Positions 1 through 64,000 of a stretch of DNA of 64,000 bases are shown in pieces (the stretch's first letter is position 1; each line of letters opens with the position of its first letter). The DNA is taken from sequence record NC_019401.1. One strand, given 5' to 3'. The notes below the pieces were generated by a model. That model saw only the letters and a list, made by a program, of their open reading frames with translations. It did not search any database and had not been told where the DNA came from. Both the position numbers and the translations under genes were made by a program.

Positions 1-16
1 TTTATTTGGATATATA

Positions 17-955
17 ATGGGTTCATTTAACACAACATGTTCGGTTTCTCGCCTACCTATTGGTATGGGTGATGAAGTAAAGATTTTCTTTCTAATTAAA
101 AATCCATACAATGATACGCACAAATGCTATATTAATGATAACTGGAATTTATTTGGTCTTCCGCTAGATGCAATCTATGATGATTATGGCAAATATGAAT
201 TAGTAGAAAATGAAAAAAATATACGTATTTGGGAAACATACGCACGAGAGTTTAAAAAACGTATCGTAGAGCGTGAACAGGGTCCAAACCAATTTCATGA
301 TTGTCCGGTATCTCGCAGCGACATTACTTTTAGTACTATTCAAGACGCCATTTGGGAAAGTCGTGCTAATCTAGAGCATAAATTTTTGGATGATAATTCT
401 GTTGATCTGAAAATCGAAATCATGGCTATTCATAAAAAAGTATATGATTCTATTAGTACTGAATTTGATTGTTGGCGTGGTAAAATTGTCCTTGAAGATA
501 AAATCAAAGAAATACAAAGCGAACACCGCTTCCCATATTATTTGAACTGCACTGAATTTTTGGAATCATTCGATGAAGATGATGAAAAATTATATGATGG
601 TGATGAATTAACAGAAGAAGGCAATAAACTACTAAGCCTAAAAATCGAATTAGAGTGGACGATTGATGGACTGATAAAAACACCTAGAATATATGAAGAT
701 GTTAACATTTATATCAATCACAGCATGGGAATCTACAATCTTGTCGAATACACAGTGCCAGAATATGCAGATTTTGCTCCAGAATTTATTCAGAAATATT
801 TGTTCGAATGTAACATGACCATGTTGAATATTGAGTATTGTCCAGCAATTACATCAGGCCAATCTTACAATTTTATGAAGCAGGTTGCATTTCATGAAAG
901 TATTGTTGAACTGGCAAAAGAACTACATCAAACACACGACAATTGGGATGATTAA
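17..955 (+). CDS. hypothetical phage protein
   Basis: 312 aa ORF with phage-like codon usage; no motif recognised. Confidence 0.8.
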   Translation: MGSFNTTCSVSRLPIGMGDEVKIFFLIKNPYNDTHKCYINDNWNLFGLPLDAIYDDYGKYELVENEKNIRIWETYAREFKKRIVEREQGPNQFHDCPVSRSDITFSTIQDAIWESRANLEHKFLDDNSVDLKIEIMAIHKKVYDSISTEFDCWRGKIVLEDKIKEIQSEHRFPYYLNCTEFLESFDEDDEKLYDGDELTEEGNKLLSLKIELEWTIDGLIKTPRIYEDVNIYINHSMGIYNLVEYTVPEYADFAPEFIQKYLFECNMTMLNIEYCPAITSGQSYNFMKQVAFHESIVELAKELHQTHDNWDD

Positions 956-957
956 AT

Positions 958-1158
958 ATGTTAAAATTGATACTAATTATATCCGTTATTGCATACATCA
1001 TTGTGGGATTTTTAACTTATACTGAATATAAAAAGAAGTTTAATTCAGAAGAAAAAATCTCAACCAAAAAAGTTATCTATATAGTCATTCATGGTTTTTT
1101 ATATGTATTGATTGGATTACTAATTGCAGTACTAGGATATTTGATTTTAACTATGTGA
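958..1158 (+). CDS. small membrane protein
   Basis: 66 aa with two hydrophobic segments. Confidence 0.7.
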   Translation: MLKLILIISVIAYIIVGFLTYTEYKKKFNSEEKISTKKVIYIVIHGFLYVLIGLLIAVLGYLILTM

Positions 1159-1165
1159 GGAAATT

Positions 1166-1612
1166 ATGGCTGGCAAAGGATTCGTCGGCCTTTCCCTTGA
1201 TAAAGAACAGGGAAAGGAAATACAAAAAATATTTAAACTAGCAGGGATCGACTGCTTGACTCCATCAAAATTTCATGTTACAGTGATGTACGATGAAAGT
1301 GAACCTGAAATAGAACTACTTTCTAATGATAAGACTTATAAAGCGAAAATCACTGGAGTAGAGCGTTTAGGTAAACCAGGTGGTGAGTGGGAAGCAATTG
1401 CTCTTTTACTTGATTCACCAGAAATTGAGAAGCGGCATAAAGAGTTGCAAAATGCAGGGTTCAAGCACAAGCATCCTAGTTTTAAATGCCATATGAGTAT
1501 CGTATATAAACCAAAAGATACTGATGAAGATTTAATTGAGTTGATTTATAAATTGGGCGTTCTACCAGAAGAATTAATCTTTGGTGATGAACATTTAGGC
1601 ACAACTGTTTAA
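1166..1612 (+). CDS. acb1: 2H phosphodiesterase, anti-CBASS Acb1 (T4 gp57B)-like
   Basis: HxT (FHVTVMY) and HxS (CHMSIVY) motifs; segment LLLDSPEIEKRH...GFKHKHPSFKCHMSIVY follows the T4 57B pattern; 148 aa. Confidence 0.75.
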   Translation: MAGKGFVGLSLDKEQGKEIQKIFKLAGIDCLTPSKFHVTVMYDESEPEIELLSNDKTYKAKITGVERLGKPGGEWEAIALLLDSPEIEKRHKELQNAGFKHKHPSFKCHMSIVYKPKDTDEDLIELIYKLGVLPEELIFGDEHLGTTV

Positions 1613-1624
1613 TTGGTATAAAAA

Positions 1625-3862: not shown

Positions 3863-3926
3863 CAGTATTTCGGAACATTAAATACTGTTAGGAAAACAAA
3901 CGTGTTATACACACAGACAAAAAAGG

Positions 3927-5375: not shown

Positions 5376-5385
5376 CAAACTTTTG

Positions 5386-7475: not shown

Positions 7476-8288
7476 ATGACAGATCATAATAATCTTGATT
7501 CAGATGAATTGCAATTAGCAAGAGAGCTATTATTTTTAATGAGCGAGATTGCTCCAACAATTACTGCATATGTTTTTAGCGATAAATGTATGTTCGGTTT
7601 TGGGAAATATTCAGAACGTGTAATTAACTGGCTTGCTACTTACAATTTCATTGTTTGTAATAACAGAACTCCGATAAATGATTCTGGTAATGCGTTCATT
7701 AACTATTACGTATTAACCGATATGGGAAAAGCATTTAACAAGATTGGAGTACTAAGTACAATCGATGTTGAAGAAAATAAAGAAAAGTTTTTCGAGCTTG
7801 GTAATGAAATTTATTCCATTTTGGAAGCTTATTACGCTGAAGAAACGAATATGTTAGCTCGTCTACTTACAGTAGAAGAACAAGACTCGTATTCTAATTA
7901 CTATCGGTTGATGACATACGAATCTATTAAGAACCGAGGCAAAAACAGTACTGATACCATTCGTGAAAACGGCTTAAAAAATATGTTTTCTCTATCAGTA
8001 CTACTAGGTGAGAAAGATGATAATGATCGCCGTACATATGATTATGTACTTAAAAAATGCGTAGAAGAACTTGGCGAACTGTCATTAGAAATTCAAATTG
8101 ATTCGGGTCTTTCATATAAAGAACCTGGTGCAGATGGCATTGAGGGTGAAGCAGTTGATCTTGCAATTTGTGCGATGGATATGTTTGCATTACAATATCC
8201 AGGATTATCACCTGAGCAAATCGAAGCTGAATTCTATAAAAAGATGAATGAAAAATTAGAGAAGTGGAAACGCACTATAGGGATGTAA
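7476..8288 (+). CDS. protein with C-terminal MazG-like NTP pyrophosphohydrolase domain
   Basis: KCVEELGELSLEI...EGEAVDLAICAMD (EExxE...ExxD). Confidence 0.6.
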   Translation: MTDHNNLDSDELQLARELLFLMSEIAPTITAYVFSDKCMFGFGKYSERVINWLATYNFIVCNNRTPINDSGNAFINYYVLTDMGKAFNKIGVLSTIDVEENKEKFFELGNEIYSILEAYYAEETNMLARLLTVEEQDSYSNYYRLMTYESIKNRGKNSTDTIRENGLKNMFSLSVLLGEKDDNDRRTYDYVLKKCVEELGELSLEIQIDSGLSYKEPGADGIEGEAVDLAICAMDMFALQYPGLSPEQIEAEFYKKMNEKLEKWKRTIGM

Positions 8289-8305
8289 AATCGGGGTTTT
8301 TGGGG

Positions 8306-8311
8306 TAAATA
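8306..8311 (+). promoter_or_regulatory. T4-type late promoter core
   Basis: TAAATA 40 nt upstream of the colanidase-like gene. Confidence 0.5.
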
Positions 8312-8350
8312 TTTGTCTAGAACAAAATTTACTCTTAAAAAGGAATCCTT

Positions 8351-10372
8351 ATGAGTGATCTTTCAGTAGTCGCGGAACGCTATTTAATTTCCGAAAGTTC
8401 AGTATGTCATGCATCTGATGGTCAATTACTTGATGATATTAAAATAGTAGTTCACTCTGATGATAGTGAGTGGTATGTTCCAACTTTACCAAAGGGAACA
8501 TTATTAAAATCATTATCACTATCATCTAATGTTGATGGAACGTGTACTTGTAAATTGGTACATACGAATGGAAGTACTGATTTGGTTAGTGCTACGCACA
8601 TATCAAGTAATATCTCAGGTAATACTGCAATACGTCAACTACCAGCTAATGATTCAAGGCTAATACGGTTTTTAAGCTTTGAACAATATGGTGCTATTTC
8701 TGGTGGTACAGTTGAATGTTCTGCCGCAATAAATGCATGTTTAAATGATGCACGAAAATATAATCTCCCAATATGGAGTACTGGAAAATACTATATTAAT
8801 AATATAGTCGATTTTTCAAACGTCACTGCAAGTGGATTCACATTAGTTGGTGGGGCAAGTTCACCAAATTCATATTGTGTACTTGTAAATGGTTCTGCCA
8901 ATATTGATAATGTAAACTTTGAAAAAGTTTATCTTCAGCATACGAATGGTGATTTGAAGTTAACCAATTTTACATTTAAAAAAGTTGGAGCTACCGCAGC
9001 AGTACTTTCATTGAATTTAACAAGTGAAGGTTCCGTAACACTCCAATATGGAACATTTAGACAATGTAACTACGGTTATTTACGTCAAGGTGATCCATTG
9101 TGGGGAAGTGCATTACGATTCCAACACTTGAAAAATCTACAGTTCTTTGATATGAACGGAGATTGTATTGAATTAAATTTGGGCATTAAAGATAGAAATA
9201 CCGAAGTTTCTGATATCCTTGTTGACAACGTTAACCATACTGGTAAAAACCTTTTTTGGGGAATTGCACTAGGATTCGCAGGTAAAACTCCTTACGGTCT
9301 TGATGCTGACGATAGTTCATATATGTCAGATGTAAGTATTAAACGTGTCAAGGTGTATGGTGCTCGCCAATGTCTTCACTTCGAAAAATGTAGAAATATA
9401 TACCTAGAAGATATTGAAATGTATCCAGACAGTACTAAGAGTGTTAACTCTGGTATTGATCCTGCTGGAATTATTCTTTACGGTTCAAAAGATATATCAA
9501 TAAAGGACGTGAAAGGTAAACCTGATCAAGCTTCAATCAAAATGATTCACACGTCATGGGGCGTTACTGATGATGCATATATTTGTGCTGAACGTAATAT
9601 TCTTGTCCGAGACGTTGATGTTGATGGAAACATTGAGTTGAATATGAGCACTAATGATGTATATAACTCATATCTAAGAGTTTACAATGTTAGTTGTAAT
9701 GTATTTGCAATAACTGGACAAGCGTCAGAATTTCATGTTGAGAATGTAAGATGTTCTAATATACTTTTGGACTTCCAACCAGTAACTAATACCAGTAAAG
9801 ACCAACTCAGAAGACACAACCGTATTACTGCAACATTCAAAGATATTGTCAGTAAAGATGAAAATCAAGATTGTGTATGTAGCATTAAAAATATTGCGAT
9901 TGATGAATTAACAGTTCAGAACTGTAATTTTCCATTCTTTAAGCAAAGTACTTCTACCATTACACGTGGAACACCAATAACAAAACTCGACGGTATATAT
10001 CACTATGATAGTGAAGGATTCCCAAATGGATACCAGTTCAAGGTTGGTGACAGAATTATAGATAGTACTGGAAAAATGTATGTTGTCAAACAATCTGGTG
10101 CTGTTTTCAGTTCATATGAGAAGGTTCGTTCTGCTGTATGTGGTCAGAATTATCTAGTTTCATATAATATGAACTGGTTGTCAGCATATAAAACTGCTGG
10201 CACTCGTATTCGCATTCCTGGTGCTGGAGAGAATGGAACAGACTTAGTGTGTACTGTAGTAAGAAGTTCACATGTCAATAATGGGATGTATAGAATTATA
10301 TTATCCGACACAATTAAAACAGATATTCCAGATGGAACTCAAATACTTCCAGAGAATATATGTAAGTACTAA
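8351..10372 (+). CDS. WcaM-like beta-helix protein, putative colanic acid depolymerase
   Basis: GDCIELN...WGIALGFAGK...RQCLHFE resembles the WcaM/phage colanidase core; beta-helix-like composition. Confidence 0.7.
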   Translation: MSDLSVVAERYLISESSVCHASDGQLLDDIKIVVHSDDSEWYVPTLPKGTLLKSLSLSSNVDGTCTCKLVHTNGSTDLVSATHISSNISGNTAIRQLPANDSRLIRFLSFEQYGAISGGTVECSAAINACLNDARKYNLPIWSTGKYYINNIVDFSNVTASGFTLVGGASSPNSYCVLVNGSANIDNVNFEKVYLQHTNGDLKLTNFTFKKVGATAAVLSLNLTSEGSVTLQYGTFRQCNYGYLRQGDPLWGSALRFQHLKNLQFFDMNGDCIELNLGIKDRNTEVSDILVDNVNHTGKNLFWGIALGFAGKTPYGLDADDSSYMSDVSIKRVKVYGARQCLHFEKCRNIYLEDIEMYPDSTKSVNSGIDPAGIILYGSKDISIKDVKGKPDQASIKMIHTSWGVTDDAYICAERNILVRDVDVDGNIELNMSTNDVYNSYLRVYNVSCNVFAITGQASEFHVENVRCSNILLDFQPVTNTSKDQLRRHNRITATFKDIVSKDENQDCVCSIKNIAIDELTVQNCNFPFFKQSTSTITRGTPITKLDGIYHYDSEGFPNGYQFKVGDRIIDSTGKMYVVKQSGAVFSSYEKVRSAVCGQNYLVSYNMNWLSAYKTAGTRIRIPGAGENGTDLVCTVVRSSHVNNGMYRIILSDTIKTDIPDGTQILPENICKY

Positions 10373-10378
10373 CCAAAT

Positions 10379-10410
10379 AGGGAAAGATGAATGTCTTTCC
10401 CTTTTATTTT
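10379..10410 (+). terminator. rho-independent terminator
   Basis: AGGGAAAGA-N6-TCTTTCCCT plus T-rich tail. Confidence 0.8.
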
Positions 10411-10426
10411 ATAATAAGGTAATACG

Positions 10427-11041
10427 ATGACAGATCATGCAAAAACAAAAGCGTTAATGGACGTTCTTGCAGAAATGAATAAACAGGATTCGAAGTGGGG
10501 AGCAGACCGCGATCAGCATCCATTTTTGTGGCAGGTTATTTTAGGTGAGGAATTCGGCGAGGTTTGTCAAGCGATTCTTCATGATGAGTTCGGCGGCTCT
10601 CACGCTGGCACAGCACGAGAAGAATTAGTACAAGTTGCTGCTGTAGCCTTGCAATTCATTGAGCAGTATGATAGACTTAGTGGAATTCAGAAAAGCGAAA
10701 CAAAAAACAAATTAGTAATTTTAGAATCTCCATTTGCAGCTACCAATGGTTATACAGTACAAGAGAATATTGATTATGCACGTAAATGTGTACGCCATTC
10801 TCTTTCATTAGGCGAAGCACCTATTGCAAGTCACTTATTGTATACGCAGGATGGAATTCTTGATGACAATATCCCCGAAGAACGTCAATGGGGTATTGAT
10901 GCTGGTCTAGCATGGAAAGAAGTTGCACACGGTTCTGTTGTTTATACTGATCGAGGAATTAGTAAAGGAATGGAATACGGTATTGCGGCTGCAATTGCTG
11001 CTGGCCTTACTGTTGAATATAGAAGTATTGAGGAAAAATAA
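10427..11041 (+). CDS. MazG-like pyrophosphohydrolase fused to a nucleoside deoxyribosyltransferase-like domain
   Basis: N-half EEFGEV...REELVQVAAVA; C-half VILESPFA...PIASHL...DRGISKGMEYGI. Confidence 0.6.
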   Translation: MTDHAKTKALMDVLAEMNKQDSKWGADRDQHPFLWQVILGEEFGEVCQAILHDEFGGSHAGTAREELVQVAAVALQFIEQYDRLSGIQKSETKNKLVILESPFAATNGYTVQENIDYARKCVRHSLSLGEAPIASHLLYTQDGILDDNIPEERQWGIDAGLAWKEVAHGSVVYTDRGISKGMEYGIAAAIAAGLTVEYRSIEEK

Positions 11042-11322
11042 TGAAAATTCGTCCAGTATATAATCACATAATTGCTAAAAAACATGTGTATGAAGCAAAA
11101 AGTGCAGGTGGTATTATTTTAACTGCCACTGGTGAAGATGAATCAACACATGCTGAAGTACTAGCGATTGGTCCCGCATTTAAATCCGATGTTAAAGTTG
11201 GTGACATTATCACTTATGAAGAAGGTGATAAACGTGTTCATTCTGAAAAAATTGACAACGAAGATATTCTGATTATGCCAGAAGATTGTGTTATTGGCGT
11301 CGTCGAGCAAAAAACTGAATAA
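11041..11322 (+). CDS. groES: co-chaperonin GroES
   Basis: MKIRPV, SAGGIIL mobile loop, VLAIGP, VKVGD. Confidence 0.9.
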   Translation: MKIRPVYNHIIAKKHVYEAKSAGGIILTATGEDESTHAEVLAIGPAFKSDVKVGDIITYEEGDKRVHSEKIDNEDILIMPEDCVIGVVEQKTE

Positions 11323-11331
11323 GGTGAAAAT

Positions 11332-12594
11332 ATGCATTCGGCATTAGTAGAATTACAAGAACGTGGATTAATCAAACAAAGTACTGATATTGAAGTACTG
11401 TCTAAACTACTTGACGAAGGTTCAGCAGTGTATTGTGGTTTTGATCCTACTGCCGATTCTCTGCATATTGGTAGTTTACTCCCACTGACTATCATGAATG
11501 TTTTTAAAAAACATGGAGTGAAAGTTATTGCGTTACTTGGCGGAGCAACTGGATCAATTGGTGATCCAAGCTTTAAATCTGAAGAACGTAAAATGTTATC
11601 ATGGGATGATATTGACCGCAATGTTGCTGGTATTCGTGCAGTTATTAAGAGTATTTTGGGCGATGTAGAAATTGTAAACAATTATTCTTGGACTAAAGAT
11701 ATTAATATGCTTGAGTTTTTGCGTGATTACGGTAAATGCTTCACTGTGAATAATATGATGAACAAAGAATCTGTACGTTCACGTATTGAACGCGATGAAC
11801 AAGGTATTTCTTTCACTGAATTTTCGTATCAAATTCTTCAAGCAATGGACTTTGAATATTTGTACGAAATGAATAACTGCAAAATCCAAATTGGTGGTTC
11901 TGACCAATGGGGTAATATGATTGCTGGAATTGATTTGATTCATAAAATCCACGGCAATGATGCAGACTGCGGTGTTATCACTATACCACTAGTTACTAAA
12001 TCTGATGGTACTAAATTTGGTAAATCAGAATCTGGTACTATCTGGTTAACTGAACAACGCACTACGCCATATCACTTCTTCCAGTTCTGGCGTAATCTAG
12101 ATGATGCAGAGATTCCAAAATTATATCAGTACTTTAAACCTTTTAGTTTCAGTGTTGATGATATTGTAAGTGAAATGACTAATGGTGACCCAAATATTGT
12201 AAAACTTCAGTTTGCAATTGCTATGACTGAGATGGTTCATGGGGAACATAAAGCTTCTTTGGCACGTGATATTACTGATTTCTTACATGGTAAAAAAGAA
12301 ATTACCGAAGAAGCAGTAGAAATGATGATTAAAAGTGGATTTGATGTTGATGAAAGTACTGACAACTTAGAATTAGTTTCTTTGGTGGTTAGTACTGGAT
12401 TAGCTGATTCCCGTAAAATGGCACGTGAGTTTATTAATAATGGTGCTGTAAAAATTAATGGTCGTAAAGTAAATGAATTTTACGATACTGCAAATTGTGA
12501 ATTTACAGAAGATGTAGATTTTGTAGATGCAAAACATTTTGTATTGCAGCGTGGTAAAAACACATATGTCGTTGTAAAAAATACAAGGCGTTAA
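11332..12594 (+). CDS. tyrS: tyrosyl-tRNA synthetase
   Basis: GFDPTADSLHIGS (HIGH), QIGGSDQWGNM, KFGKS (KMSKS), C-terminal S4-like domain. Confidence 0.97.
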   Translation: MHSALVELQERGLIKQSTDIEVLSKLLDEGSAVYCGFDPTADSLHIGSLLPLTIMNVFKKHGVKVIALLGGATGSIGDPSFKSEERKMLSWDDIDRNVAGIRAVIKSILGDVEIVNNYSWTKDINMLEFLRDYGKCFTVNNMMNKESVRSRIERDEQGISFTEFSYQILQAMDFEYLYEMNNCKIQIGGSDQWGNMIAGIDLIHKIHGNDADCGVITIPLVTKSDGTKFGKSESGTIWLTEQRTTPYHFFQFWRNLDDAEIPKLYQYFKPFSFSVDDIVSEMTNGDPNIVKLQFAIAMTEMVHGEHKASLARDITDFLHGKKEITEEAVEMMIKSGFDVDESTDNLELVSLVVSTGLADSRKMAREFINNGAVKINGRKVNEFYDTANCEFTEDVDFVDAKHFVLQRGKNTYVVVKNTRR

Positions 12595-12595
12595 T

Positions 12596-12802
12596 ATGAA
12601 GATTGTATACGCAATATTAATTGCATTACTTTTAACGTCATGTCGTACCGAAGACAAAGTTCAAAACATTGTACTGTACGGTAATAAAACACTTTACCCT
12701 GAAGTACTAAATGCTACTTTAAAATTAGATAACAAAGAGTATTCTTGTACTAGTTTTGACGGAAAGCATGATCAACTTGTTTTCGTGTGTCGTAAGAAAT
12801 AA
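12596..12802 (+). CDS. putative lipoprotein
   Basis: signal peptide with LLTSC lipobox. Confidence 0.6.
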   Translation: MKIVYAILIALLLTSCRTEDKVQNIVLYGNKTLYPEVLNATLKLDNKEYSCTSFDGKHDQLVFVCRKK

Positions 12803-12808
12803 GACTTG

Positions 12809-12931
12809 AGAAATACAAAGCCGTGCATTCTGGCAAAAACCAGATATAAGACCGTTTACGCTTCAATGCTAGTACTTGAAAACTCCCTACTCGTTAGAAC
12901 TACCAATTTCCAGGGCGTTGTATTTCTTTTT
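12809..12931 (+). ncRNA. candidate structured intergenic RNA element
   Basis: AGAAATACAA/TTGTATTTCT closing stem with nested GCC/GGC, GCAT/ATGC, TCTGG/CCAGA and TAGT/ACTA helices. Confidence 0.35.
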
Positions 12932-12949
12932 AATTTAGAGAGGAATAAT

Positions 12950-13591
12950 ATGAATATCGTAGAAAAGTACTACTGGATCATAGAGCACCCAAAATATGTT
13001 CCATTCGGTGATACCGCAGTCATCGAAATCACACCACACATGGTTTGTCCAGAAACAAATTGCGTTGAAAAATTAGAATTGTTGAATACTAAACTACAAT
13101 TTTGGGTTGAGTTGTTGATTCCATTCTTCGATGAACAACACAAACAACACTGTCATTCACATGATTGGGAATTGGATTGTGGTGGTGACACATGGGAAGA
13201 AGCCGTTGAAAATTTGTACAAATTGGTTCTCGAAAAGTACGGTGATTATACCCAAGAAGATTTGGATAAGCAACGTGAAGAAGCAATGAAAGATTTCGAT
13301 ATGGATAAATGGGTAAAAACCGTAGATTCAATGATGGCTGATAATAAAGAATCGAGTGAAGTCGTAATGTTACCAGATTATGAAATCGAACATATGAAGT
13401 TTGAAATCGGGCATTTAGAAGTTCTACAAGAAGTGCTTCAAAATAAATTGCGTGAACCAACAATAACAATGCAAGAATACGATGATGTTCAATTGGAACT
13501 AATCTGCGTAGATCACGACTTATATGTAATGCGTGAAAGCGTTAAATGTGGTTATGATGTAGAAAAATATGGTCTAAGGAATGAAGATTGA
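12950..13591 (+). CDS. hypothetical acidic protein
   Basis: ATG 12950 with GAGGA RBS (shorter than ORF-track call). Confidence 0.75.
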   Translation: MNIVEKYYWIIEHPKYVPFGDTAVIEITPHMVCPETNCVEKLELLNTKLQFWVELLIPFFDEQHKQHCHSHDWELDCGGDTWEEAVENLYKLVLEKYGDYTQEDLDKQREEAMKDFDMDKWVKTVDSMMADNKESSEVVMLPDYEIEHMKFEIGHLEVLQEVLQNKLREPTITMQEYDDVQLELICVDHDLYVMRESVKCGYDVEKYGLRNED

Positions 13592-13946
13592 AAAACTGAT
13601 TCGCATCTTGCAGAAGATGCCTCAGCATAAACAAATCAAGTGCACTCGAAAGAAATATAAAATTATTGCTTGTGCACTTGATAGAAAGGGTAAAGTACTG
13701 GCGATGAGGACGAACGATTATGATTGTTCTCATCCATTACAAAAACATTTTGCAGTACTTGTTGGAAAGCCTGAAGCAATTTTTCTACATGCTGAAATCG
13801 CCACGTTAATTGCCGCACGAAAAGAAGTTCATAAATTACTTATTGCCAGGGTTGATAAGAATGGAAATCCACTTTCAGCAAAACCTTGTCCAATATGTGA
13901 AAAAGCAATTGAAGCCTTTGGAGTAAAAGAGATTGAATACACTTAA
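13581..13946 (+). CDS. zinc-dependent cytidine/dCMP deaminase-fold protein
   Basis: HAE and PCPIC motifs. Confidence 0.8.
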   Translation: MKIEKLIRILQKMPQHKQIKCTRKKYKIIACALDRKGKVLAMRTNDYDCSHPLQKHFAVLVGKPEAIFLHAEIATLIAARKEVHKLLIARVDKNGNPLSAKPCPICEKAIEAFGVKEIEYT

Positions 13947-14193
13947 TGCATCATTGGTCGCGATAATCGATATTTTCAAAAAAGGAAATGAATCTGACAT
14001 GTACATTAGTACTGTCACATTCCTTTTCAAAACTATATCAGAAGAAAAAGAATCTGGTACATATGATATGGAAAAGTATTTCTCAAATGCTATTTCCATT
14101 CATAATCGTCTGCGAGAAAAATATAATGCAGATTTTAACGGGCCACTATTATCGTGGTACAGAAGGTTTATAGGATTGCATGGAGGTTTATAA
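13933..14193 (+). CDS. hypothetical protein
   Basis: fills gap between neighbours; start uncertain. Confidence 0.45.
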   Translation: MNTLNASLVAIIDIFKKGNESDMYISTVTFLFKTISEEKESGTYDMEKYFSNAISIHNRLREKYNADFNGPLLSWYRRFIGLHGGL

Positions 14194-14744
14194 TGGAAAC
14201 AATTGTAATTAATTTAGTTGGGGGTCCCTGTTCAGGAAAATCTACAACAGCGGCAGGGTTATTTGCTAAAATGAAACTACACACTAAACAACGTGTAGAA
14301 ATCGTAACTGAAGTAATCAAAGATTACGTGTACGATGAAAACAAAATGGCAATGCAAGATCAAGTACTGATCACTGCAAACCAGAACCACCGCCTATTCC
14401 GTTTAAATGGAAAGGTGGATTTTGTCGTATCTGATGCATCTCTACTAAATGGTATTGTCTATAATGAATTCTACGATGATGTAGAAAATATTAGTTCTAC
14501 TATTGCGTGGCAACTTTATCAGCAATACAACAATATTGTATTTCTACTTCCACGTAAGCCTGAATATGATCAGTACGGTAGAACTCAATCATTAGAAGAA
14601 GCTAAAGAGCTGGATCGTTTGTTTGTGGAAAATCTTACACATTTCAATATTCCATTTATTGATATGCGTGAATATACTCATGAAGAAATGCCTGACCGTA
14701 TTCTTGAAGTACTTTCTGCAAAATATGGTTTTGATACACATTAA
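14193..14744 (+). CDS. P-loop nucleotide kinase/ATPase (NadR-like AAA_28)
   Basis: GGPCSGKST Walker A; ATG 14193 with GGAGG RBS. Confidence 0.8.
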   Translation: METIVINLVGGPCSGKSTTAAGLFAKMKLHTKQRVEIVTEVIKDYVYDENKMAMQDQVLITANQNHRLFRLNGKVDFVVSDASLLNGIVYNEFYDDVENISSTIAWQLYQQYNNIVFLLPRKPEYDQYGRTQSLEEAKELDRLFVENLTHFNIPFIDMREYTHEEMPDRILEVLSAKYGFDTH

Positions 14745-14753
14745 GGATTTATA

Positions 14754-15044
14754 GTGAAACAATTAGCACAATTAGTAGAAAATCAAGAAAATGCAGGTCA
14801 AATTTATTATGCTTGTAATGTGCGTAATGTAATTCAGCCAGTAAGGGTACGACTAGTATCCGTTACTGAAATTTATAAAAATGTTGACCATAAAGATTTT
14901 CCATTAATGGCAGTAATAGTTTATGAAAGTGATGAAATTCCAGTACCTTCAAAATTTAATACGATTCCAATAAGTTGTACTGTATTGTTTGATACATACG
15001 AAGAAGCATCATTCGAGTTCTCTAAGTACTGGAAAATTCATTGA
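14754..15044 (+). CDS. hypothetical protein
   Basis: GTG start with AAGGA RBS. Confidence 0.65.
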   Translation: MKQLAQLVENQENAGQIYYACNVRNVIQPVRVRLVSVTEIYKNVDHKDFPLMAVIVYESDEIPVPSKFNTIPISCTVLFDTYEEASFEFSKYWKIH

Positions 15045-15071
15045 ACAAACGTTAATCAAAGTTCTGAAATC

Positions 15072-15085
15072 TTGATCTAGATCAA
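15072..15085. promoter_or_regulatory. FNR consensus box upstream of nrdD
   Basis: TTGAT-CTAG-ATCAA perfect consensus; TATTTT (-10-like) starts 30.5 bp from its centre. Confidence 0.65.
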
Positions 15086-15088
15086 TAG

Positions 15089-15120
15089 AAATACCCCGTT
15101 ATATGGGGTATTTTAATTTT
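15089..15120 (+). terminator. rho-independent terminator before nrdD
   Basis: AAATACCCC-N7-GGGGTATTT plus T-rich tail. Confidence 0.7.
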
Positions 15121-15153
15121 TAAGTGCGTAAATAAATTCACCTAAAATTAGAC

Positions 15154-16968
15154 ATGGAGAGTCGTATGAATAACGATAGATTGTACAGTGATATTAACGA
15201 GTTTTTGAACCAAAGCAATAAAGATTTACTGAATGAAAATGCAAACAAGGATGCAAAGATTGTTAATACGCATCGCGATTTACTTGCTGGTATTCTGTCT
15301 AAACATTTTGCAGAAGATATTATTTCAGAAGATTTAATGCAATGGCATAAAAATGGTTATGGTCACATACACGATCTCGATTATTTTATAAGCCCACTAA
15401 CGAACTGTTGCTTAGTAAATTACAGAGATATGTTAGAAAATGGATTTAAGATTGGGAATGCACAAGTTGGCACTCCTAAAAGTATTGGTGTTGCAAGCAC
15501 AGTACTTACACAAATTGTATTAGCTGTTTCCGCGAGTCAATATGGCGGTCAAACACTAGCACACATTGATTTTGGACTCGAACCATACGTTCAGAAGTCC
15601 TACGATAAGCTCTTAGAGCAGCAGAAGGAATTCAACCTACCAGATGAGTTCGTTGAAAAAACCCTTCAGAAAGAGGTTTATGACGCTATGCAAGCGTTGT
15701 TATACCAGGTGAATACAATCACATCAAGTAATGGTCAAACACCTTTTGTCACTATTACTATGGGATTAAACACATCAAAATTTGGTAAAATGATTACTGA
15801 TTCGTACTTAAAAGTTCACGAAAAAGGATTGGGTGTTGATGGCACAACTCCGGTATTCCCTAAAGTAGTATTCTTCCTAGAAGATGGAGTGAATATGAAG
15901 GAAGAAGATCCCAACTACGATCTTAAAGTACAGGCAATGAAAACTTCAGCTAAACGAATCTATCCTGATTTTGTTTCAGTACCATTGAATAAGAAAGTAA
16001 CTGGCAGTACTAGTATTGCGGTTTCACCAATGGGATGCAGATCATTTCTAGGAAAATGGGATGATGGCAGTACTGAAAAATATGATGGTCGTTTTAACCT
16101 TGGAGTAGTGTCAATTAATTTACCATTACTTGCACTCGAATCAAATTCTGATGGTGAATTCTTTGGCAAGATTGACTATCACATGAATATGGCATATCGT
16201 GCACAAATGAATCGTGTCGAACGATTGAAGAATACAAAAGCACGGCAAAACCCTACTATGTTTATGGAAGGTGCAATTTCCCGTCTTGATGCAGATGACA
16301 CAATTGAAAAACTCTTCTATGACGGATACGCAAGTATTAGTATTGGTTATGTAGGCTTAGCAGAATGTTCTGAAATTATGAAAGGACAGATTGTAAAAGA
16401 TTATTGCAAATCTATTCTTCATTATATGAAATATAAATGCGAGCAATTCAAAGAAGAAAGTAATATCGCTTTTAGTTTATATGGAACTCCAGCCGAAAGC
16501 TTATGCTATAAATTTGCAAGAGCAATTGAAGAAAAGCATCCTAATATTCTAAAACGTAACTTTATTACAAACTCATTCCACCAGCCAGTGTGGATTAACT
16601 CTGGACAATTTAGCAAGTTTGATTACGAAGAAGGATTTGCATATCTAAGTAATGGTGGAAATATTAGCTATGTTGAAACCCCAAATCTTTCAAATAACAT
16701 GACTGCACTAGAAACATTAATCAATTATGCATATGAAAGAATTCCGTACTTCGGTATAAATCAGCCAGTAGATAAATGCTATAAGTGCGAGTTTGAAGGT
16801 GAATTTGAAGTTGATAAAATTGGATTCCACTGTCCACAGTGTGATAATAGAGAAGAAGGAACTATGTCAGTGATTCGCAGGGTTTCTGGATATTTGAGTG
16901 CACCTAATAGTAGACCTTTCAACACTGGCAAACAGCAAGAAGTTATACAACGAATTAAACACCAATAA
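15154..16968 (+). CDS. nrdD: anaerobic (class III) ribonucleoside-triphosphate reductase
   Basis: HIHDLD, MGCRSFL, YGTPAESL, CxxC...CxxC, RRVSGYL glycyl-radical motif; true start may be 15166. Confidence 0.97.
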   Translation: MESRMNNDRLYSDINEFLNQSNKDLLNENANKDAKIVNTHRDLLAGILSKHFAEDIISEDLMQWHKNGYGHIHDLDYFISPLTNCCLVNYRDMLENGFKIGNAQVGTPKSIGVASTVLTQIVLAVSASQYGGQTLAHIDFGLEPYVQKSYDKLLEQQKEFNLPDEFVEKTLQKEVYDAMQALLYQVNTITSSNGQTPFVTITMGLNTSKFGKMITDSYLKVHEKGLGVDGTTPVFPKVVFFLEDGVNMKEEDPNYDLKVQAMKTSAKRIYPDFVSVPLNKKVTGSTSIAVSPMGCRSFLGKWDDGSTEKYDGRFNLGVVSINLPLLALESNSDGEFFGKIDYHMNMAYRAQMNRVERLKNTKARQNPTMFMEGAISRLDADDTIEKLFYDGYASISIGYVGLAECSEIMKGQIVKDYCKSILHYMKYKCEQFKEESNIAFSLYGTPAESLCYKFARAIEEKHPNILKRNFITNSFHQPVWINSGQFSKFDYEEGFAYLSNGGNISYVETPNLSNNMTALETLINYAYERIPYFGINQPVDKCYKCEFEGEFEVDKIGFHCPQCDNREEGTMSVIRRVSGYLSAPNSRPFNTGKQQEVIQRIKHQ

Positions 16969-17439: not shown

Positions 17440-18183
17440 ATGGCAAAATTGACAAAGCAAGAAATTGCAAATCACAATAAAATTCTGGATTTAATAAACT
17501 CAGATAAAGTACTGACATTCGATGAAAAATGGTTTATTCTTGAGAACTATCACGAAGGTGCAACCAATATTAACTCCGCTGCTGGAGCATTTTTTACCCC
17601 AATATACTATTCAAGAGATTTTTGTTTAGAAGTTTGGGGTGATACTGTAATTGATATGTGTGCCGGAATTGGATCTTTATCATTTATGGTAGCAAATAAG
17701 TATGATCCAAATGATATTCCTAGTCAGATTGTATGTGTTGAATTAAATCCAGAATATGCAGAAATTGGTAAACGAATAGTACCGGAAGCTGACTGGATTA
17801 TTGCAGATGTTCTATCGTATGAATCGCCAATTATGTTTGATCAAAGCATAAGTAACCCACCATTCGGTCGTATTAAAACATCTGATGTTAAAGATTTATC
17901 ATATAAAGGTGCAGAGTTCGAATTTAAAGTTATCTCAAAAGCATCCACATTGTCAAAATACGGTACTTTCATATTACCTCAAGGAAGTTCAGGATTTAAA
18001 TACTCTAATAACAGATACTATGAAAGATGTGAGACTGATAAGTACAAAAAGTTTAAAGAACAAACTCAAATAGAATTACATCCTGGTATTGGAATTGATT
18101 CATCCGTTTTTAAAGATGACTGGAAGGGTGTGAACATTATTACTGAAGTATGTGTTGCGGATTTCTCAGGAGAATTTCTATGA
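17440..18183 (+). CDS. amino-DNA methyltransferase (NPPF type, likely m6A)
   Basis: GAFFTP, DMCAGIG (motif I) before SNPPF (motif IV). Confidence 0.85.
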   Translation: MAKLTKQEIANHNKILDLINSDKVLTFDEKWFILENYHEGATNINSAAGAFFTPIYYSRDFCLEVWGDTVIDMCAGIGSLSFMVANKYDPNDIPSQIVCVELNPEYAEIGKRIVPEADWIIADVLSYESPIMFDQSISNPPFGRIKTSDVKDLSYKGAEFEFKVISKASTLSKYGTFILPQGSSGFKYSNNRYYERCETDKYKKFKEQTQIELHPGIGIDSSVFKDDWKGVNIITEVCVADFSGEFL

Positions 18184-21608: not shown

Positions 21609-21617
21609 GGAAACCAA

Positions 21618-24356: not shown

Positions 24357-24367
24357 AAGGAATTTAA

Positions 24368-29377: not shown

Positions 29378-29383
29378 ATTATA

Positions 29384-36710: not shown

Positions 36711-36740
36711 ATGAAACACAATTAAAAATTGTGGTATAAT
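36711..36740 (+). promoter_or_regulatory. promoter, ATGAAAC-N17-TATAAT class
   Basis: ATGAAAC, 17 nt, TGG-TATAAT. Confidence 0.7.
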
Positions 36741-37360
36741 GTAGGGGAAGACCTGAAAAGGTTTTCCTCTAAAAACTCTGATTGATCCATAATATGGAAT
36801 AGTTTAAACCTGATCTCGTTGAAAATGTAAACAGCAGATGAGTAGTTCAATCAGTACGAGTGCAATATATTTTACCCGTTAGGAATCGGCATAGTTTGTA
36901 CCGACCACGGCAATGCGGCACTTTAAATGCGTCCTTGACATGAACGCACTAGATAGGCATTAGAGGCATACTCACCTGTTAAAAGGGAGATATTCTACGG
37001 AATATCAATAGTACTTGTTGCTGAATTAGCGAGTACTATATGCGAAGGAATGTGAAATCTTCGACCGTTGTATGCGACTGTAGTAACTGGAAACCGGACA
37101 ACCCGCCAGTGTTTGCTACAAATTTTAGATAATATAGATCCGTCCAAAATTTGAGTAAAATCTACAAATTCAGAGGTAAGACTACCACCGTCAGATATAT
37201 TCTGACTTTTTTTCGTTCCCCTTTCGTGGGGGGATGCAAATGGATCAACAAACCCCGTCAGTATAAAAGTATTGAACGTACTTAAATAATAGAACTGAAT
37301 GTTTAATTATTCGAGTTCGACAGAACGAGAAGAATGAAACATTCTTGGCTAACGGAGTTA
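36741..37360 (+). ncRNA. candidate large structured non-coding RNA (~600 nt)
   Basis: no ORF of 60 aa or more; directly after a promoter; GC-richer than flanks; GAAA and cUACGg tetraloop hairpins with G-U pairs; 9 bp long-range helix 36782-36790/37240-37248. Confidence 0.55.
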
Positions 37361-37364
37361 GACA

Positions 37365-47750: not shown

Positions 47751-48364
47751 ATGATATACGGATTTGGAATTTATGATGGAACTTTTGTTGGAAAAAATAA
47801 CGAAAATCTAATATATCAAATATGGGTTGGTATGATAAAACGGTGTTATTCAACAAGGCATCAGATTGCAAATCCGTCTTATATAGGAACTACTGTTAGT
47901 GATGATTGGAAATTATATTCTAATTTTGAAAAGTGGTATAATGAAAATTATATTGACGGATTTTATTTAGATAAAGATATAATCGGTGGTTCTAAAAAAA
48001 ATATTCGCCGGAAACATGTGCGTTTGTACCAAGAGAAATTAATAATTGTATTACAGAAAGTAATTCGTCAGGAAGTGAATTTTCTTTGGGTGTTTGTTAC
48101 CATAAAAAGAAAAAATCGATGATAAATGAATATAAAAAACCTTTCTATTCTCAATTAAATAACAAAAGTTTAGGCTCTTTTGAAACTAACGAAGAAGCAC
48201 ACTTAGCTTGGCAATTAGCTAAACGTGATTCATTGACGTGCCTTATTAAAAAATATAAAGACATTGTGAATCCAGATGTAATAAATGGGTTACAAAAACG
48301 AATTGATATTTTAACCAATGATATTGATAACAATTTAATCACAGCTACACTTAACAAAATTTAG
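47751..48364 (+). pseudogene. HNH-type endonuclease split by a -1 frameshift at an A8 run
   Basis: frame 1 W.GMIKRCY...LDKDIIGGSKK continues in the -1 frame as YSPETCAFVPREIN at 48002. Confidence 0.75.
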
Positions 48365-48381
48365 TTTTAAGGAGTACTTTT

Positions 48382-58964: not shown

Positions 58965-58971
58965 TATAAAT

Positions 58972-58997: not shown

Positions 58998-59044
58998 ATT
59001 GCTAAATATAATATACATTCCATATTAAATAGGGGAAAATATAA

Positions 59045-59821: not shown

Positions 59822-59831
59822 GGAGTACTGA

Positions 59832-61384
<1,553 letters not shown>

Positions 61385-61385
61385 T

Positions 61386-61955
61386 ATGAAAGCTAAACGT
61401 GGAGTCGAAGAAGCATTAGGCTTGCCAAATTCGGAAGAATTAAAAAAACTATTAGGCGATGAGTATAATGAAGATGATTTTTACGATGACGAGGATGAAG
61501 ATATTGAAAGTACTGATATTTCTGAACTTCAAATCGATGAAGCTCGTCGTTCTATGAAGCAGTTGAAAGAATACCGTGAACAGCTAAAAGATATTCCAGA
61601 TATTACAAATCGTAAGGCACATTTAGACCGTTTAGCAAAAATGGCTGAAGATAAGTTCGAAGATATTTTTGACCGTGCTTTTAATTGTGAAGATAGATTT
61701 GCATCTGAAATGATAAATGCTGCAAATGCTATGTTAAAAATTGCATTAGATGCACATGCTAAAGTTATTGATTCAGATATTAAACTGATTGATATGCAGA
61801 TTAAGAAAGATAAGATGGAAATTGAACTTAATCAGAAGCCAAAAAATCAGCAAGCACTGGTAGATAATTCTGATCCTAATGCTATAGAAGGTGAGAAGGT
61901 AGTAGTAGTTAAGTCTCGTAATGAGCTACTTGCTTCTATGAGTAAGAATAAATAA
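61386..61955 (+). CDS. helical protein, possibly terminase small subunit-like
   Basis: coiled-coil core and C-terminal VVVKSRNELL weakly recall T4 gp16. Confidence 0.35.
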   Translation: MKAKRGVEEALGLPNSEELKKLLGDEYNEDDFYDDEDEDIESTDISELQIDEARRSMKQLKEYREQLKDIPDITNRKAHLDRLAKMAEDKFEDIFDRAFNCEDRFASEMINAANAMLKIALDAHAKVIDSDIKLIDMQIKKDKMEIELNQKPKNQQALVDNSDPNAIEGEKVVVVKSRNELLASMSKNK

Positions 61956-61982
61956 AATAAAATACTGTGACTCGGAGTTAAC

Positions 61983-62528
61983 ATGAACAAATTACAGAAA
62001 ATTTTAACAGAACTTACTCCAGAATATTCATATCGTGTAAAATTTGCGTGTGAGCCAAGCTCCGAAGAATTACATAAAGTCGTCGCTAGGCTTACAGATC
62101 GTTATGATGCTTTTGAAGTTGGTCCATTAAAGAAAACAATTTTCCAAGACCGTCCTATTGATTTTTATAATCTAGATTGTGGCGAAATTTGGATGTTCGA
62201 TTTTAAATGCCATCGTGGTGTGCAACCACAAGTACTATTGTTTGAAATCGGTAGTCTATTGAAATGGTCGGAATCATTAATTCACGTTAGAAATAATTTA
62301 GACCCATATCAGGAAGAAATTTCTGATTCTGAAGATGATATTGAATTTGATGAATACGAACCACGTCTTTTAGACCCTGAATATAAAGAAGTTCCAGAAG
62401 TTAATGCTGAGGAACTAGGTGGTCAGGGTCGTGCAGATACTGCGGTTAAAGATGCATTAGACGATTATAAAAAAGGTAAAACACCATACGCAGAATATAT
62501 GTCTGCTGGATTTGGTAAGAAGGGGTAA
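61983..62528 (+). CDS. hypothetical late protein
   Basis: 181 aa, GGAG RBS. Confidence 0.75.
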   Translation: MNKLQKILTELTPEYSYRVKFACEPSSEELHKVVARLTDRYDAFEVGPLKKTIFQDRPIDFYNLDCGEIWMFDFKCHRGVQPQVLLFEIGSLLKWSESLIHVRNNLDPYQEEISDSEDDIEFDEYEPRLLDPEYKEVPEVNAEELGGQGRADTAVKDALDDYKKGKTPYAEYMSAGFGKKG

Positions 62529-62530
62529 TC

Positions 62531-63106
62531 ATGAGTCTTTTAGAAGAAATGTTTGATGGTCAACCAGAACCATTGAATGAAAGACCTTATAGCCGTACAC
62601 AGTCAGCAATTGATTCGGCAAAAGGAAAAGTAAAAGGTTTCTTTGGTTCAGGTCAAGTTGAGCAAGGTGCTCAAGAAACTGGACAAATGGCAAACCAGTT
62701 GTGGGCTGACTTTAAACGTTATATCGGTAGAAAATATGGTTCCCATCCACAATCTGTTTCATATAGTGATGTTGCTGCGTTTTTTAAAGGTAACGATTTG
62801 GACACTTCCTTTTTAGGTAATAATGAGCGTCGTTCATTTTCTCCTAAAGATGTTGGTAATGCATTAATGCAAGCTGTTCAGAAATTGAATACCGATTATG
62901 AATATCAAAAAGAAAAACAACCAGAACAAGGTGAAGAACAACCAGAACAAGGCCAAGGCCAAGGTTCAGAACAAGGTTCAGGGGAAGGTCAGCCACAAGC
63001 TGGACAAGGCCAACCACAAGGAGCAGGTGCTGGATCATCAATTCCAGATCGTTTATCTTCATTAAGTTCTGCTGATAGAGCAAAATTACTAAGACTAATT
63101 TCTTAA
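62531..63106 (+). CDS. hypothetical protein with Q/G/E-rich linker
   Basis: 191 aa. Confidence 0.75.
   Translation: MSLLEEMFDGQPEPLNERPYSRTQSAIDSAKGKVKGFFGSGQVEQGAQETGQMANQLWADFKRYIGRKYGSHPQSVSYSDVAAFFKGNDLDTSFLGNNERRSFSPKDVGNALMQAVQKLNTDYEYQKEKQPEQGEEQPEQGQGQGSEQGSGEGQPQAGQGQPQGAGAGSSIPDRLSSLSSADRAKLLRLIS
62915..63022 (+). repeat. low-complexity coding repeats (QPEQG/QG)
   Basis: AACAACCAGAACAAGG twice and repeated CAAGG units within a CDS. Confidence 0.7.
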
Positions 63107-63118
63107 TAGGAGAAGAAT

Positions 63119-64000
63119 ATGTTTAAATCTTTAGATAATAACAATTCGATTCCAAATAATTATGTATACACTTCCAATAAAGGTACAGAATATATGTACC
63201 TTGATGGTTCATGGCTTAACTGTGAAACTATGAGTACTGTTCCTAGTACTCATAATTTTAAAATGAATGAGTCAGCAATTCGTCAGATTGCTGAACATAA
63301 CCGACATAACAAATTACAAATCGGTAAGAAATATGTCATCAAAGAATCTGAATATGTATATGTTGGTCGCAATAACTTCACATTAAACGATAACTTATTG
63401 ACAGAAAATGTAAATTCTCGTGTTAAAATGTTGGTTGAGGCTGATGCAAAATCTGAGTTTTCTAATGTAAAATTAGGCAGTACTGAAAATATCGAAATTC
63501 CAGATAAGTTTAAACTTGATGGTTATGTATACAACAAGGCGAAAAAAGCTTGGTGGGGTACTACTGATAACGGTAACGCTGGTTATATAAAAGACCAAGA
63601 ATTAATTGATGAACTTAACAAAGATTCAATTGAACGAATTAAAAAGTATAATGAAAAAGACCCATATCCAGTAGGAACAACTGTTGACTACAATGGTAAA
63701 ACTGCAATATGGAATGGTGAAGTTTTTGTTGTTCCAGGTGAAGGTGCTTACCCACCAGGATTTGCACAACAATTTGATGATTATTTTCAAAATGTTTATA
63801 AATCTGGTAATAACAATGACAGTACTGAACAACAGGATAAAGAAGATACCGTGAATACCTCTGACAATTCAAATACTAATGAACCACAAAATACAGGTTC
63901 AACAAGTAGTACTGAAGTTCCTAACGGATTTGTGTATCAATCTGGAAAAGGCAAAAGTTATTACAAGAAAAATGGTCGCTGGTTCTCAAGTGAAACCAAA
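63119..64000 (+). CDS. partial CDS running off the window end (not in ORF track)
   Basis: ATG 63119 with AGGAG RBS, open to 64000; internal repeat IPNNYVYTSNKGTEY...W / VPNGFVYQSGKGKSY...W. Confidence 0.8.
   Translation, partial: MFKSLDNNNSIPNNYVYTSNKGTEYMYLDGSWLNCETMSTVPSTHNFKMNESAIRQIAEHNRHNKLQIGKKYVIKESEYVYVGRNNFTLNDNLLTENVNSRVKMLVEADAKSEFSNVKLGSTENIEIPDKFKLDGYVYNKAKKAWWGTTDNGNAGYIKDQELIDELNKDSIERIKKYNEKDPYPVGTTVDYNGKTAIWNGEVFVVPGEGAYPPGFAQQFDDYFQNVYKSGNNNDSTEQQDKEDTVNTSDNSNTNEPQNTGSTSSTEVPNGFVYQSGKGKSYYKKNGRWFSSETK

Follow-up and report, generated by a model that had tools for sequence, protein, structure and literature searches.

An iterated AGTACT palindrome in Rak2-like jumbo phages: a possible binding site, independent of two candidate methyltransferases

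What keeps a single six-base palindrome at several times its expected frequency along the genome of a giant phage? The question is raised by a stretch of 64,000 nucleotides, called here the window at its full length, that corresponds with 100% identity to record positions 62001-126000 of the Cronobacter phage vB_CsaM_GAP32 (NC_019401.1, 358,663 bp, genus Mimasvirus; GAP32 in what follows), from whose record the gene annotation of the window and of the rest of the genome was taken. The element is the word AGTACT. HIP1 (GCGATCGC), the highly iterated palindrome of cyanobacteria, is found many times more often than by chance in coding and non-coding DNA, and is maintained across related genomes while its individual copies turn over, without agreement about its function. 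A first-pass annotation of the window had read AGTACT as a DNA-level iterated palindrome of the HIP1 kind, methylated as a self tag by one of two enzymes encoded nearby; the first part of this reading stood and the proposed cognate methyltransferases did not. The word is DNA-level, symmetric, clade-specific, regionally concentrated, promoter-linked in part and independent of both enzymes (GAP32_152 and GAP32_140). We give a probability of roughly 0.4 to the reading that AGTACT is a clade-wide element, kept at a set density, that acts as the recognition site of a sequence-specific factor on double-stranded DNA.

AGTACT is the top-ranking hexamer of the window. Its sites, with the two copies that precede start codons, are as follows.

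Window 1 to 64000, unstranded: AGTACT, 163 copies, one per 392 bp; of these, 156 are genic, with every frame used, and 7 non-coding.
Window 48373 to 48378, unstranded: AGTACT in the spacer between the ribosome-binding site and the start of the gene at 48382 (non-coding list and annotation).
Window 59824 to 59829, unstranded: AGTACT in the spacer between the ribosome-binding site and the start of the tail-tube gene at 59832 (non-coding list and annotation).

The exact count is close to the earlier estimate of about 160 sites with at least 48 in the first 18.7 kb (50 lie at or before 18,700), and base composition gives an expectation of 21.5, inside the range of 20-25 that had been proposed. Markov models of orders 1-2 expect 15-29 copies; an order-4 model expects 136, a null that is uninformative because AGTAC and GTACT occur mostly within AGTACT itself. 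When synonymous codons were permuted within each gene in 500 trials, a procedure that keeps the protein and the per-gene codon usage, 45.7±5.4 sites were expected with a maximum of 68 (z=21.8), an expectation that is itself raised by the codons locked inside AGTACT sites. A dicodon null (codon-Markov, every codon pair preserved) was applied to the sites spanning three codons only, because the frame-0 form AGT-ACT is itself a dicodon, and left an excess of about 2-fold: 59 vs 29.9 expected for xxA-GTA-CTN and 26 vs 11.2 for xAG-TAC-Txx. The excess thus survives both nulls, under which the first-pass annotation had allowed that it might vanish.

The 163 sites divide into 71 AGT-ACT, 59 xxA-GTA-CTN, 26 xAG-TAC-Txx and the 7 non-coding ones, bearing out the spread over three frames and into ribosome-binding-site spacers that had been described. 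No codon pair in the window is as over-represented as AGT-ACT (71 vs 11.8), and 71 of the 132 Ser-Thr dipeptides are spelled AGTACT where 15 were expected; in the window proteins the dipeptide ST is 1.57-fold over-represented and TS stands at 1.01. Val-Leu, a dipeptide likewise inflated by the sites, is spelled GTA-CT in 70 of 136 cases, with the preceding codon ending in A in 59 of these 70. AG-TAC was chosen in 26 of 52 [K/Q/E]-Y-[Txx] contexts, half of the eligible Lys/Gln/Glu-Tyr ones, though these are minority codons; the earlier remark had been on disfavoured AAG-TAC. The comparison with related words that had been suggested showed no comparable excess: the controls ACTAGT (14), TGTACA (16) and AGATCT (6) were not enriched in the window, the RGTACY/WGTACW variants were at expectation and GTAC outside AGTACT showed no enrichment there. 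The E. coli Chi sequence, with 1 and 2 copies, was not enriched in the window either. A force acting on DNA and not on protein, comparable in kind to HIP1, is supported.

Over the whole GAP32 genome AGTACT is the commonest hexamer, with 1011 copies (2.82/kb) against 192 expected from an order-2 Markov model or 121 from composition. It is the sole strongly enriched palindrome, 5.3-fold, the runner-up reaching 1.8-fold. Such abundance is all the more remarkable in a genome from which palindromes have otherwise been purged: 27 of the 64 palindromic hexamers are absent from the 358 kb with expectations of up to 88, among them CTTAAG (0/88, observed/expected), CTGCAG (0/82), CAGCTG (0/73) and GGTACC (0/71), and the same genome has 0 GCGC where 255 were expected and 8 GATATC instead of 108. 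The EcoRI, HindIII, NdeI and NsiI sites are not avoided. The sampled relatives of the clade share the purge, apart from words that persist in particular lineages: CGTACG in Hallingskeid, GGTACC in RaK2 and CTTAAG in 121Q. GATC is also under-represented, with an observed/expected ratio of 0.60 relative to the codon shuffle in the window (z=-8.8) and of 0.66 genome-wide, despite an encoded Dam-family enzyme.

Tail sheath identity was used as the clade marker, with the enriched group cut at at least 66% and the outgroup loci at 50% or less. The relatives were sampled as loci, and GAP32 was counted over its whole genome. The sample at or above 66% comprised GAP32, CBB, BF, Yen9-04, Kaldavass-like and Munch-like contigs, 121Q, RaK2 and several metagenomic contigs. 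Following the earlier proposal to look in related jumbo phages, here the Rak2-like ones, AGTACT was found enriched in all 19 of its sheath-region loci (1.7-2.8/kb). In 17 of these its excess was the strongest, and elsewhere in these phages the density reaches 3.7 sites/kb. No enrichment was seen in 18 of the 19 loci at or below 50% sheath identity (0-0.6 sites/kb). The exception, IMGVR_UViG_3300027985_000659 (sheath 40% identical, 34% guanine plus cytosine, GC), has AGTACT as its top hexamer with 18 copies vs 5.1 expected, while nearer relatives at 46-50% sheath identity are not enriched, indicating either an independent gain or a patchy loss of the site reader. In GAP161, an unrelated T4-like phage of the same host species, 0 AGTACT were found in 20 kb against 3.6 expected. 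Because the enrichment is clade-wide and absent from GAP161, the trait belongs to the phage clade and not to the host.

Individual positions are far less stable than the density, which stays near 2-3 sites/kb. In a 22-kb multi-genome alignment, where site conservation was measured against that of all hexamers, the GAP32 sites were conserved in CBB at 74% (44% for all hexamers), in BF and Yen9 at 42-45% (25-27%), in 121Q at 25% (12%) and in RaK2 essentially not at all (1/37, 3%, vs 9.5%). Gains and losses polarised in two sister pairs over two regions gave 108 shared sites, 101 lineage-specific ones that neither outgroup has, and 23 clear losses. The source hexamer could be inferred from the outgroup for 12 gains and was AATATT in 4 of the 12, a symmetric double transition. 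Gains outnumber losses while positions shift, and therefore the density is upheld by continual new sites together with a moderate retention of the old ones. Site number also goes with residence: long-resident genes carry 3.7-6.9 sites/kb, and the patchy methyltransferase genes (140 and 519), which probably arrived recently, 1.2-1.3/kb. The HNH endonuclease genes GAP32_181, 182, 274 and 355 (27-30% GC) have none, which is consistent with recent mobile arrivals that are still without the signature of the genome.

Window 47751 to 48364, and GAP32 record 207155 to 208063 and 268000 to 268626: HNH endonuclease genes, low in GC and free of AGTACT.

Three tandem paralogues of about 900 amino acids each (GAP32_143-145, window 18900-27118), without a Pfam match and with an annotated similarity to gp115 of phage EL, carry about 3.4 AGTACT/kb.

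The bases around the sites show a symmetric extended preference, which is what a dimer reading duplex DNA would give. C or A at -1 and G or T at +1 are favoured and G at -1 and C at +1 disfavoured; pooling the two sides gives roughly a two-fold preference for C at -1 (G at +1) and a three- to ten-fold bias against G at -1 (C at +1). NNC-AGTACT-GNN is at least 2-fold enriched and NNG-AGTACT-CNN stands at 0.1-0.36-fold, the order of the flanked forms being CAGTACTG, then AAGTACTT, then TAGTACTA, with GAGTACTC far behind. The density is equal in the plus- and minus-strand gene blocks (2.4-3.4/kb in minus-strand genes). Being palindromic, AGTACT carries no polarity, and a polar sequence of the Chi or KOPS type was rejected on this account, the word being its own reverse complement with the same density in both strand blocks.

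The density is not uniform along the genome. The GAP32 record has 8.6 sites/kb at 1-2780, 5.8/kb at 2781-24850, 4.3/kb to 40 kb and 2.5/kb elsewhere, a two- to three-fold rise at the left end, which is the region of the terminal repeat and of the early genes. The annotated terminal repeat of CBB (22,456 bp), to which GAP32 record 2781-24850 is equivalent, has 6.4/kb. Non-coding DNA in the first 20 kb of GAP32 contains 10-12 sites/kb against 2.0/kb in the non-coding DNA of the window, and arrays of up to 23 AGTACT are found in the largely non-coding record 2.4-4.3 kb, by the terminal-repeat boundary inferred from CBB. An unbiased scan of the GAP32 genome for sigma-70-like promoters (n=33) placed AGTACT directly against the -35 hexamer in 10 of them, 9 of these at record 7.7-14.7 kb. 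In 8 of the 33, all in that same interval, a second box, (G)AGTACT, lies a single base upstream of the -10 hexamer. The two boxes are 20-21 bp apart, on the same helix face, and the cassette can be written AAAAGTACTTGCAA-N9-10-GCGAGTACTTTATAAT. Transcription from such a promoter does not include the box upstream of the -35 hexamer, a point in favour of a reading of the DNA and not of the RNA.

GAP32 record 7761 to 15360, and also in CBB, BF and metagenomic loci: two-box early-promoter cassettes.
Window 37010 to 37041, plus strand: two AGTACT boxes at a distance of 22 bp (AGTACTTGTTGCTGAATTAGCGAGTACTATAT), which form a degenerate version of the cassette (0 matches in 100 shuffles).

CBB, BF, Kaldavass-like contigs and contigs of the clade with 74% sheath identity show the cassette as well, and also a local density of 5.4-7.7/kb. 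An exact search in 121Q and RaK2 gave no exact match, a looser one not having been tried. No such boxes are present in the TGAAACG-type promoters that have been described in CBB and GAP32, and the cassette is distinct from these. The copy of the cassette in the window was not called as a sigma-70 promoter by a simple promoter scan. It sits in an unusually long intergenic gap of 654 bp (36711-37364), in which positions 36711-36740 also resemble a promoter and 37190-37206 a terminator hairpin; the gap could hold a small RNA or a decayed gene.

Which enzyme, if any, could mark these sites? Five methyltransferases are annotated in the GAP32 genome, and the two that the first-pass annotation had put forward, GAP32_152 as the first candidate and GAP32_140 as the second, lie in the window.

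Window 30489 to 31349, plus strand: GAP32_152, beta-class N4/N6 DNA methyltransferase (PF01555, 1e-36), with 5 AGTACT (5.8/kb).
Window 17440 to 18183, plus strand: GAP32_140, NPPF methyltransferase-like, with 1 AGTACT in the gene.

The motifs reported for them are there, SNPPFG in GAP32_140 and, in GAP32_152, ITSPPY at residues ~44-49 followed by DPFGGSGTT near residue 232. GAP32_152 therefore has the order expected of an M.ScaI-type fold, with the SPPY catalytic motif before the FxGxG motif for S-adenosylmethionine (AdoMet). Neither a paired restriction endonuclease nor its presence wherever the sites occur goes with it: no restriction-enzyme-like partner stands beside the gene, whose neighbours have no Pfam match and are fast-evolving paralogues. 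Its best match in the PDB is the N4-cytosine enzyme M.PvuII (7e-20). The homology route to its specificity was rejected, ending as it does at M.PvuII, whose different site is absent from the genome, and the NCBIfam and source names give no specificity. Besides GAP32, orthologues were found only in CBB, BF, Yen9-03/04, the pEa_SNUABM phages, Kaldavass and XbC2. They are 84-92% identical in amino acids, compared with 35-70% for the neighbours. Directly upstream, GAP32_148, 150 and 151 (window 28566-30480) are such fast-evolving paralogues, 35-70% identical between phages, and the block GAP32_150-153 is missing in Hallingskeid.

The idea that GAP32_152, or else GAP32_140, methylates AGTACT genome-wide as a self mark, the palindrome being enriched as substrate of the mark, could draw on a genuine M.PvuII-like beta-class enzyme with SPPY, far better conserved than its neighbours and carrying 5 copies of the word in its own gene. 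The co-occurrence with this enzyme, for which a test had been suggested, fails, though. No orthologue was detected in RaK2, 121Q, PBECO4 or Munch, all as enriched as GAP32; in Hallingskeid the gene is missing at the syntenic place and the enrichment is the same; and AGTACT is not enriched (9 vs 5.1) in a phage that has a 55% homologue. The published nanopore methylomes, which compare native with amplified DNA, point in the same direction. In Kaldavass GATC, CCWGG and TGCAT were found and AGTACT was not reported, and in Hallingskeid only GATC and CCWGG, AGTACT again not being reported (PMC11780129). Kaldavass has three methyltransferases, including the GAP32_152 orthologue CDS0509 (86% identical), and 67 AGTACT in 18.9 kb at locus 285923-304780; Hallingskeid has two methyltransferases and no orthologue, and the sampled loci of both phages exceed 3.5 AGTACT/kb. 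Since TGCAT is the sole extra motif in the phage with the orthologue, it is the simplest target for GAP32_152, which probably recognizes it. The simplest mapping would assign GATC to the Dam-family enzyme, CCWGG to the C5 enzyme and TGCAT to the N4-type one, keeping in mind the caution of the authors that host enzymes may contribute to the observed motifs (PMC11780129). TGCAT is depleted in the Kaldavass locus 285923-304780 (5 vs 19.5 expected) and is at expectation in GAP32, CBB and BF and in phages without the methyltransferase.

GAP32_140 fares no better. It has only weak matches, to small or RNA methyltransferase domains, and is possibly not a DNA enzyme. Its orthologues among jumbo phages are found only in GAP32 and Yen9, so that most enriched phages are without it, and GAP161 has no AGTACT in its 20 kb although a homologue of the GAP32_140 family is common in such T4-like phages. 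On the METHYLTRANSFERASE arm, the patchy phyletic distribution together with the Kaldavass methylome means therefore that neither GAP32_152 nor GAP32_140 is the cause of the enrichment. A mark made by either enzyme is very improbable, being already largely refuted by the phyletic distribution. GAP32_152 itself is unlikely to be specific for AGTACT, the Kaldavass methylome counting against it as indirect evidence, and would best be seen as an ordinary, strongly conserved orphan anti-restriction methyltransferase. The notion of a self tag, if true, works without these two enzymes.

Another clade-conserved methyltransferase could be marking the sites, for instance the Dam-family enzyme GAP32_068 (PF05869), with orthologues in RaK2 (47%), 121Q-like coliphages (41%), Salmonella 7t3, Yen9 and Kaldavass, or the C5 enzyme GAP32_390, with orthologues in PBECO4 (75%) and Klebsiella jumbo phages (67%). 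The two methylomes of the clade, however, show only GATC, CCWGG and, in one of them, TGCAT in spite of more than 3.5 AGTACT/kb in the sampled loci, and each of these motifs has its counterpart in one of the Dam-like, C5 and N4 enzymes. In addition, the bisulfite data of RaK2 place 5-methylcytosine in a CpG context, and AGTACT has no CpG (PMC3622015). Protective methylation would moreover give neutrality and not a 5-fold enrichment, and we consider this possibility improbable. A host protein of the Enterobacterales is another conceivable reader, quite improbable in our view. Where the host of an enriched phage is named, it nearly always belongs to the Enterobacterales (the Xanthomonas phage XbC2, which bears a GAP32_152 orthologue, lies outside our AGTACT counts), and the 12-bp site of the nucleoid-occlusion factor SlmA, GTGAGTACTCAC, has AGTACT at its centre (PMC3020112). 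SlmA, however, needs each half-site (GTRAGY) to begin with G and T (PMC3020112), and in GAP32 the half-sites number 24 vs 31.6 and 15 vs 26.1 expected, with 0 full sites in 358 kb. The GTG flank stands at 0.27-fold, and G at -1 and C at +1 are depleted 3-10 fold. The SlmA site was rejected on its wrong flanks and the absent outer G-T, and the lack of AGTACT in GAP161, an unrelated phage of the same host, speaks against a host protein. The location of nearly all window genes on one strand and the 26 tRNAs that the phage encodes might suggest a signal in the messenger RNA (AGUACU), or else a side effect of biases in codons, tRNAs or dinucleotides and of the palindrome purge. We disfavour this reading, which is scarcely credible: the excess survives the codon and dicodon nulls and is present in every frame, minus-strand genes have the same density, sites occur at untranscribed positions upstream of promoters and in dense non-coding arrays, the flanks are symmetric and GTAC outside the hexamer is not enriched.

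The chief rival to a binding site is a molecular drive without function for the organism, in which site-specific mismatch or heteroduplex repair, or biased gene conversion, creates AGTACT. Near-cognate alleles would be converted during the intense recombination of T4-related phages, with the density peaking in the terminal repeat. The 101 lineage-specific gains against 23 losses, positions that are not conserved at depth, the gradient from the terminal repeat, the poverty in sites of recently acquired genes and the 4 of 12 inferable gains from AATATT by a symmetric double transition would all agree with it. Against it, none of the 18 one-mismatch neighbours is clearly depleted, with observed/expected ratios of 0.70-1.44 where more than 10 were expected (AGGACT, 2 vs 6.4, has a z of -1.8) and a sum of 477 vs 446 expected. 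This argues against a Vsr-type very-short-patch mechanism, and enrichment of the Dcm/Vsr kind was rejected because the neighbours that would be deamination products are not depleted (AGTATT 0.92, AATACT 0.70); nor is there a Vsr-like gene in the GAP32 annotation. The precise conserved promoter boxes and the 10-12 sites/kb in left-end non-coding DNA, against 2/kb elsewhere, look functional, and an AGTACT-specific protein would still be required. We consider such a drive unlikely.

We prefer to see AGTACT as a recognition site, whose reader would most likely be a phage-encoded dimeric DNA-binding or restriction-enzyme-like protein. Specific to the clade, this protein would bind the AGTACT boxes, with the left-end arrays and the promoter boxes as high-occupancy or regulatory sites that could serve an operator-like control of early transcription or nucleation at the terminal repeat. 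The approximately 800 genic sites would give a low-level occupancy along the genome, by which the DNA could for example be coated, organised or recognised as self without methylation. Weak selection spread over many sites would account for a conserved density with unconserved positions. Several observations weigh on the other side. The sole annotated helix-turn-helix (HTH) protein, GAP32_488, is limited to GAP32, CBB and XbC2, a distribution too narrow for a clade-wide reader, and was rejected as such. The spacing of the sites is essentially random (coefficient of variation 0.81-0.93, and near-Poisson at 0.81 in the window), with no preferred pair distance outside the left end; regular spacing and helical phasing were likewise discarded for the DNA outside it. 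Away from the left end the sites do not favour non-coding over coding DNA (2.0 vs 2.6/kb in the window). The cassettes may be duplicated modules, and the boxes that they share are therefore not independent observations. Finally, a conversion bias linked to recombination would give the same population-genetic signature and would also peak in the recombination-prone terminal repeat.

The comparison with known systems helps to place the element. AGTACT resembles HIP1 as a short perfect palindrome far above chance genome-wide, in excess in all frames and in non-coding DNA, whose abundance is kept among related genomes while the copies turn over. It differs in being 6 bp long, AT-rich and of another sequence, in residing in a virus rather than in a cell and in a genome that has lost 27 of 64 palindromic hexamers, in its density gradient toward one genome end and in being part of a promoter class. 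It also has no co-distributed cognate methyltransferase, that is, no co-occurrence with an enzyme whose site includes the palindrome. Chi, KOPS and the DNA uptake sequences are likewise short over-represented words, whose density is fixed by weak selection or drive while their positions drift, and each is read by a dedicated protein machine; unlike AGTACT they are asymmetric, strand- or orientation-biased and 7-12 nt long. The word is the recognition site of ScaI, and the window has an M.PvuII-like orphan methyltransferase of the N4C type, but restriction pressure leads to avoidance and protective methylation to neutrality, and neither gives a 5-fold excess. Furthermore, GAP32_152 is absent from half of the enriched clade and the methylome of a relative points to TGCAT. 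With the SlmA sites of E. coli it shares the central six bases, a symmetric dimer site and a distribution over the genome, without the outer G-T and with adjacent G/C selected against. A looser analogy is with the DNA of SPO1 bound by TF1 and the first-step-transfer DNA of T5, which combine a long terminal repeat, small host-takeover genes, strong early promoters and reiterated short motifs; no homologue of TF1 or of the T5 proteins was encountered in GAP32, none having been looked for, and unlike in these early regions the motif AGTACT also pervades the rest of the GAP32 genome.

The first-pass annotation knew of no description of this for such phages, and indeed we found no paper linking AGTACT with jumbo phages in the searchable full-text literature, in which the original GAP32 paper (Abbasifar 2014) was not covered. 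Searches of full texts for AGTACT with bacteriophage over-representation or palindromes returned nothing relevant, and the genome papers of CBB and RaK2 (RaK2: PMC3622015) treat promoters and methyltransferases and do not discuss AGTACT. The element is of the HIP-like iterated kind, found here in a virus and with no co-distributed methyltransferase. The left-end density gradient and the two-box early-promoter class are new.

Cyanobacteria have been known for decades to carry iterated palindromes, on whose function there is still no agreement, and here one is found in lytic, genetically tractable phages, some of the Rak2-like ones growing on laboratory E. coli. The trait has clear boundaries (one clade, with the nearest relatives and unrelated phages of the same host lacking it) and an internal gradient, the promoter class offers an immediate assay, and the reader and the purpose of an iterated palindrome become directly testable. 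On the practical side, these genomes hold about 1000 ScaI sites and none for some 27 common six-cutters. The finding bears on self-recognition and on early-gene timing in giant phages with unmodified DNA. It is possible, though in our opinion rather doubtful, that AGTACT is a non-epigenetic self word, read unmodified by a dedicated phage protein that nucleates on the terminal-repeat arrays and the two-box promoters and occupies about 1000 sites. If true, such a word would time early transcription and organise, or else distinguish or shield, the phage chromosome, in a lineage otherwise stripped of palindromes to evade restriction, and viruses would have their first HIP-like system, one whose reader is open to experiment.

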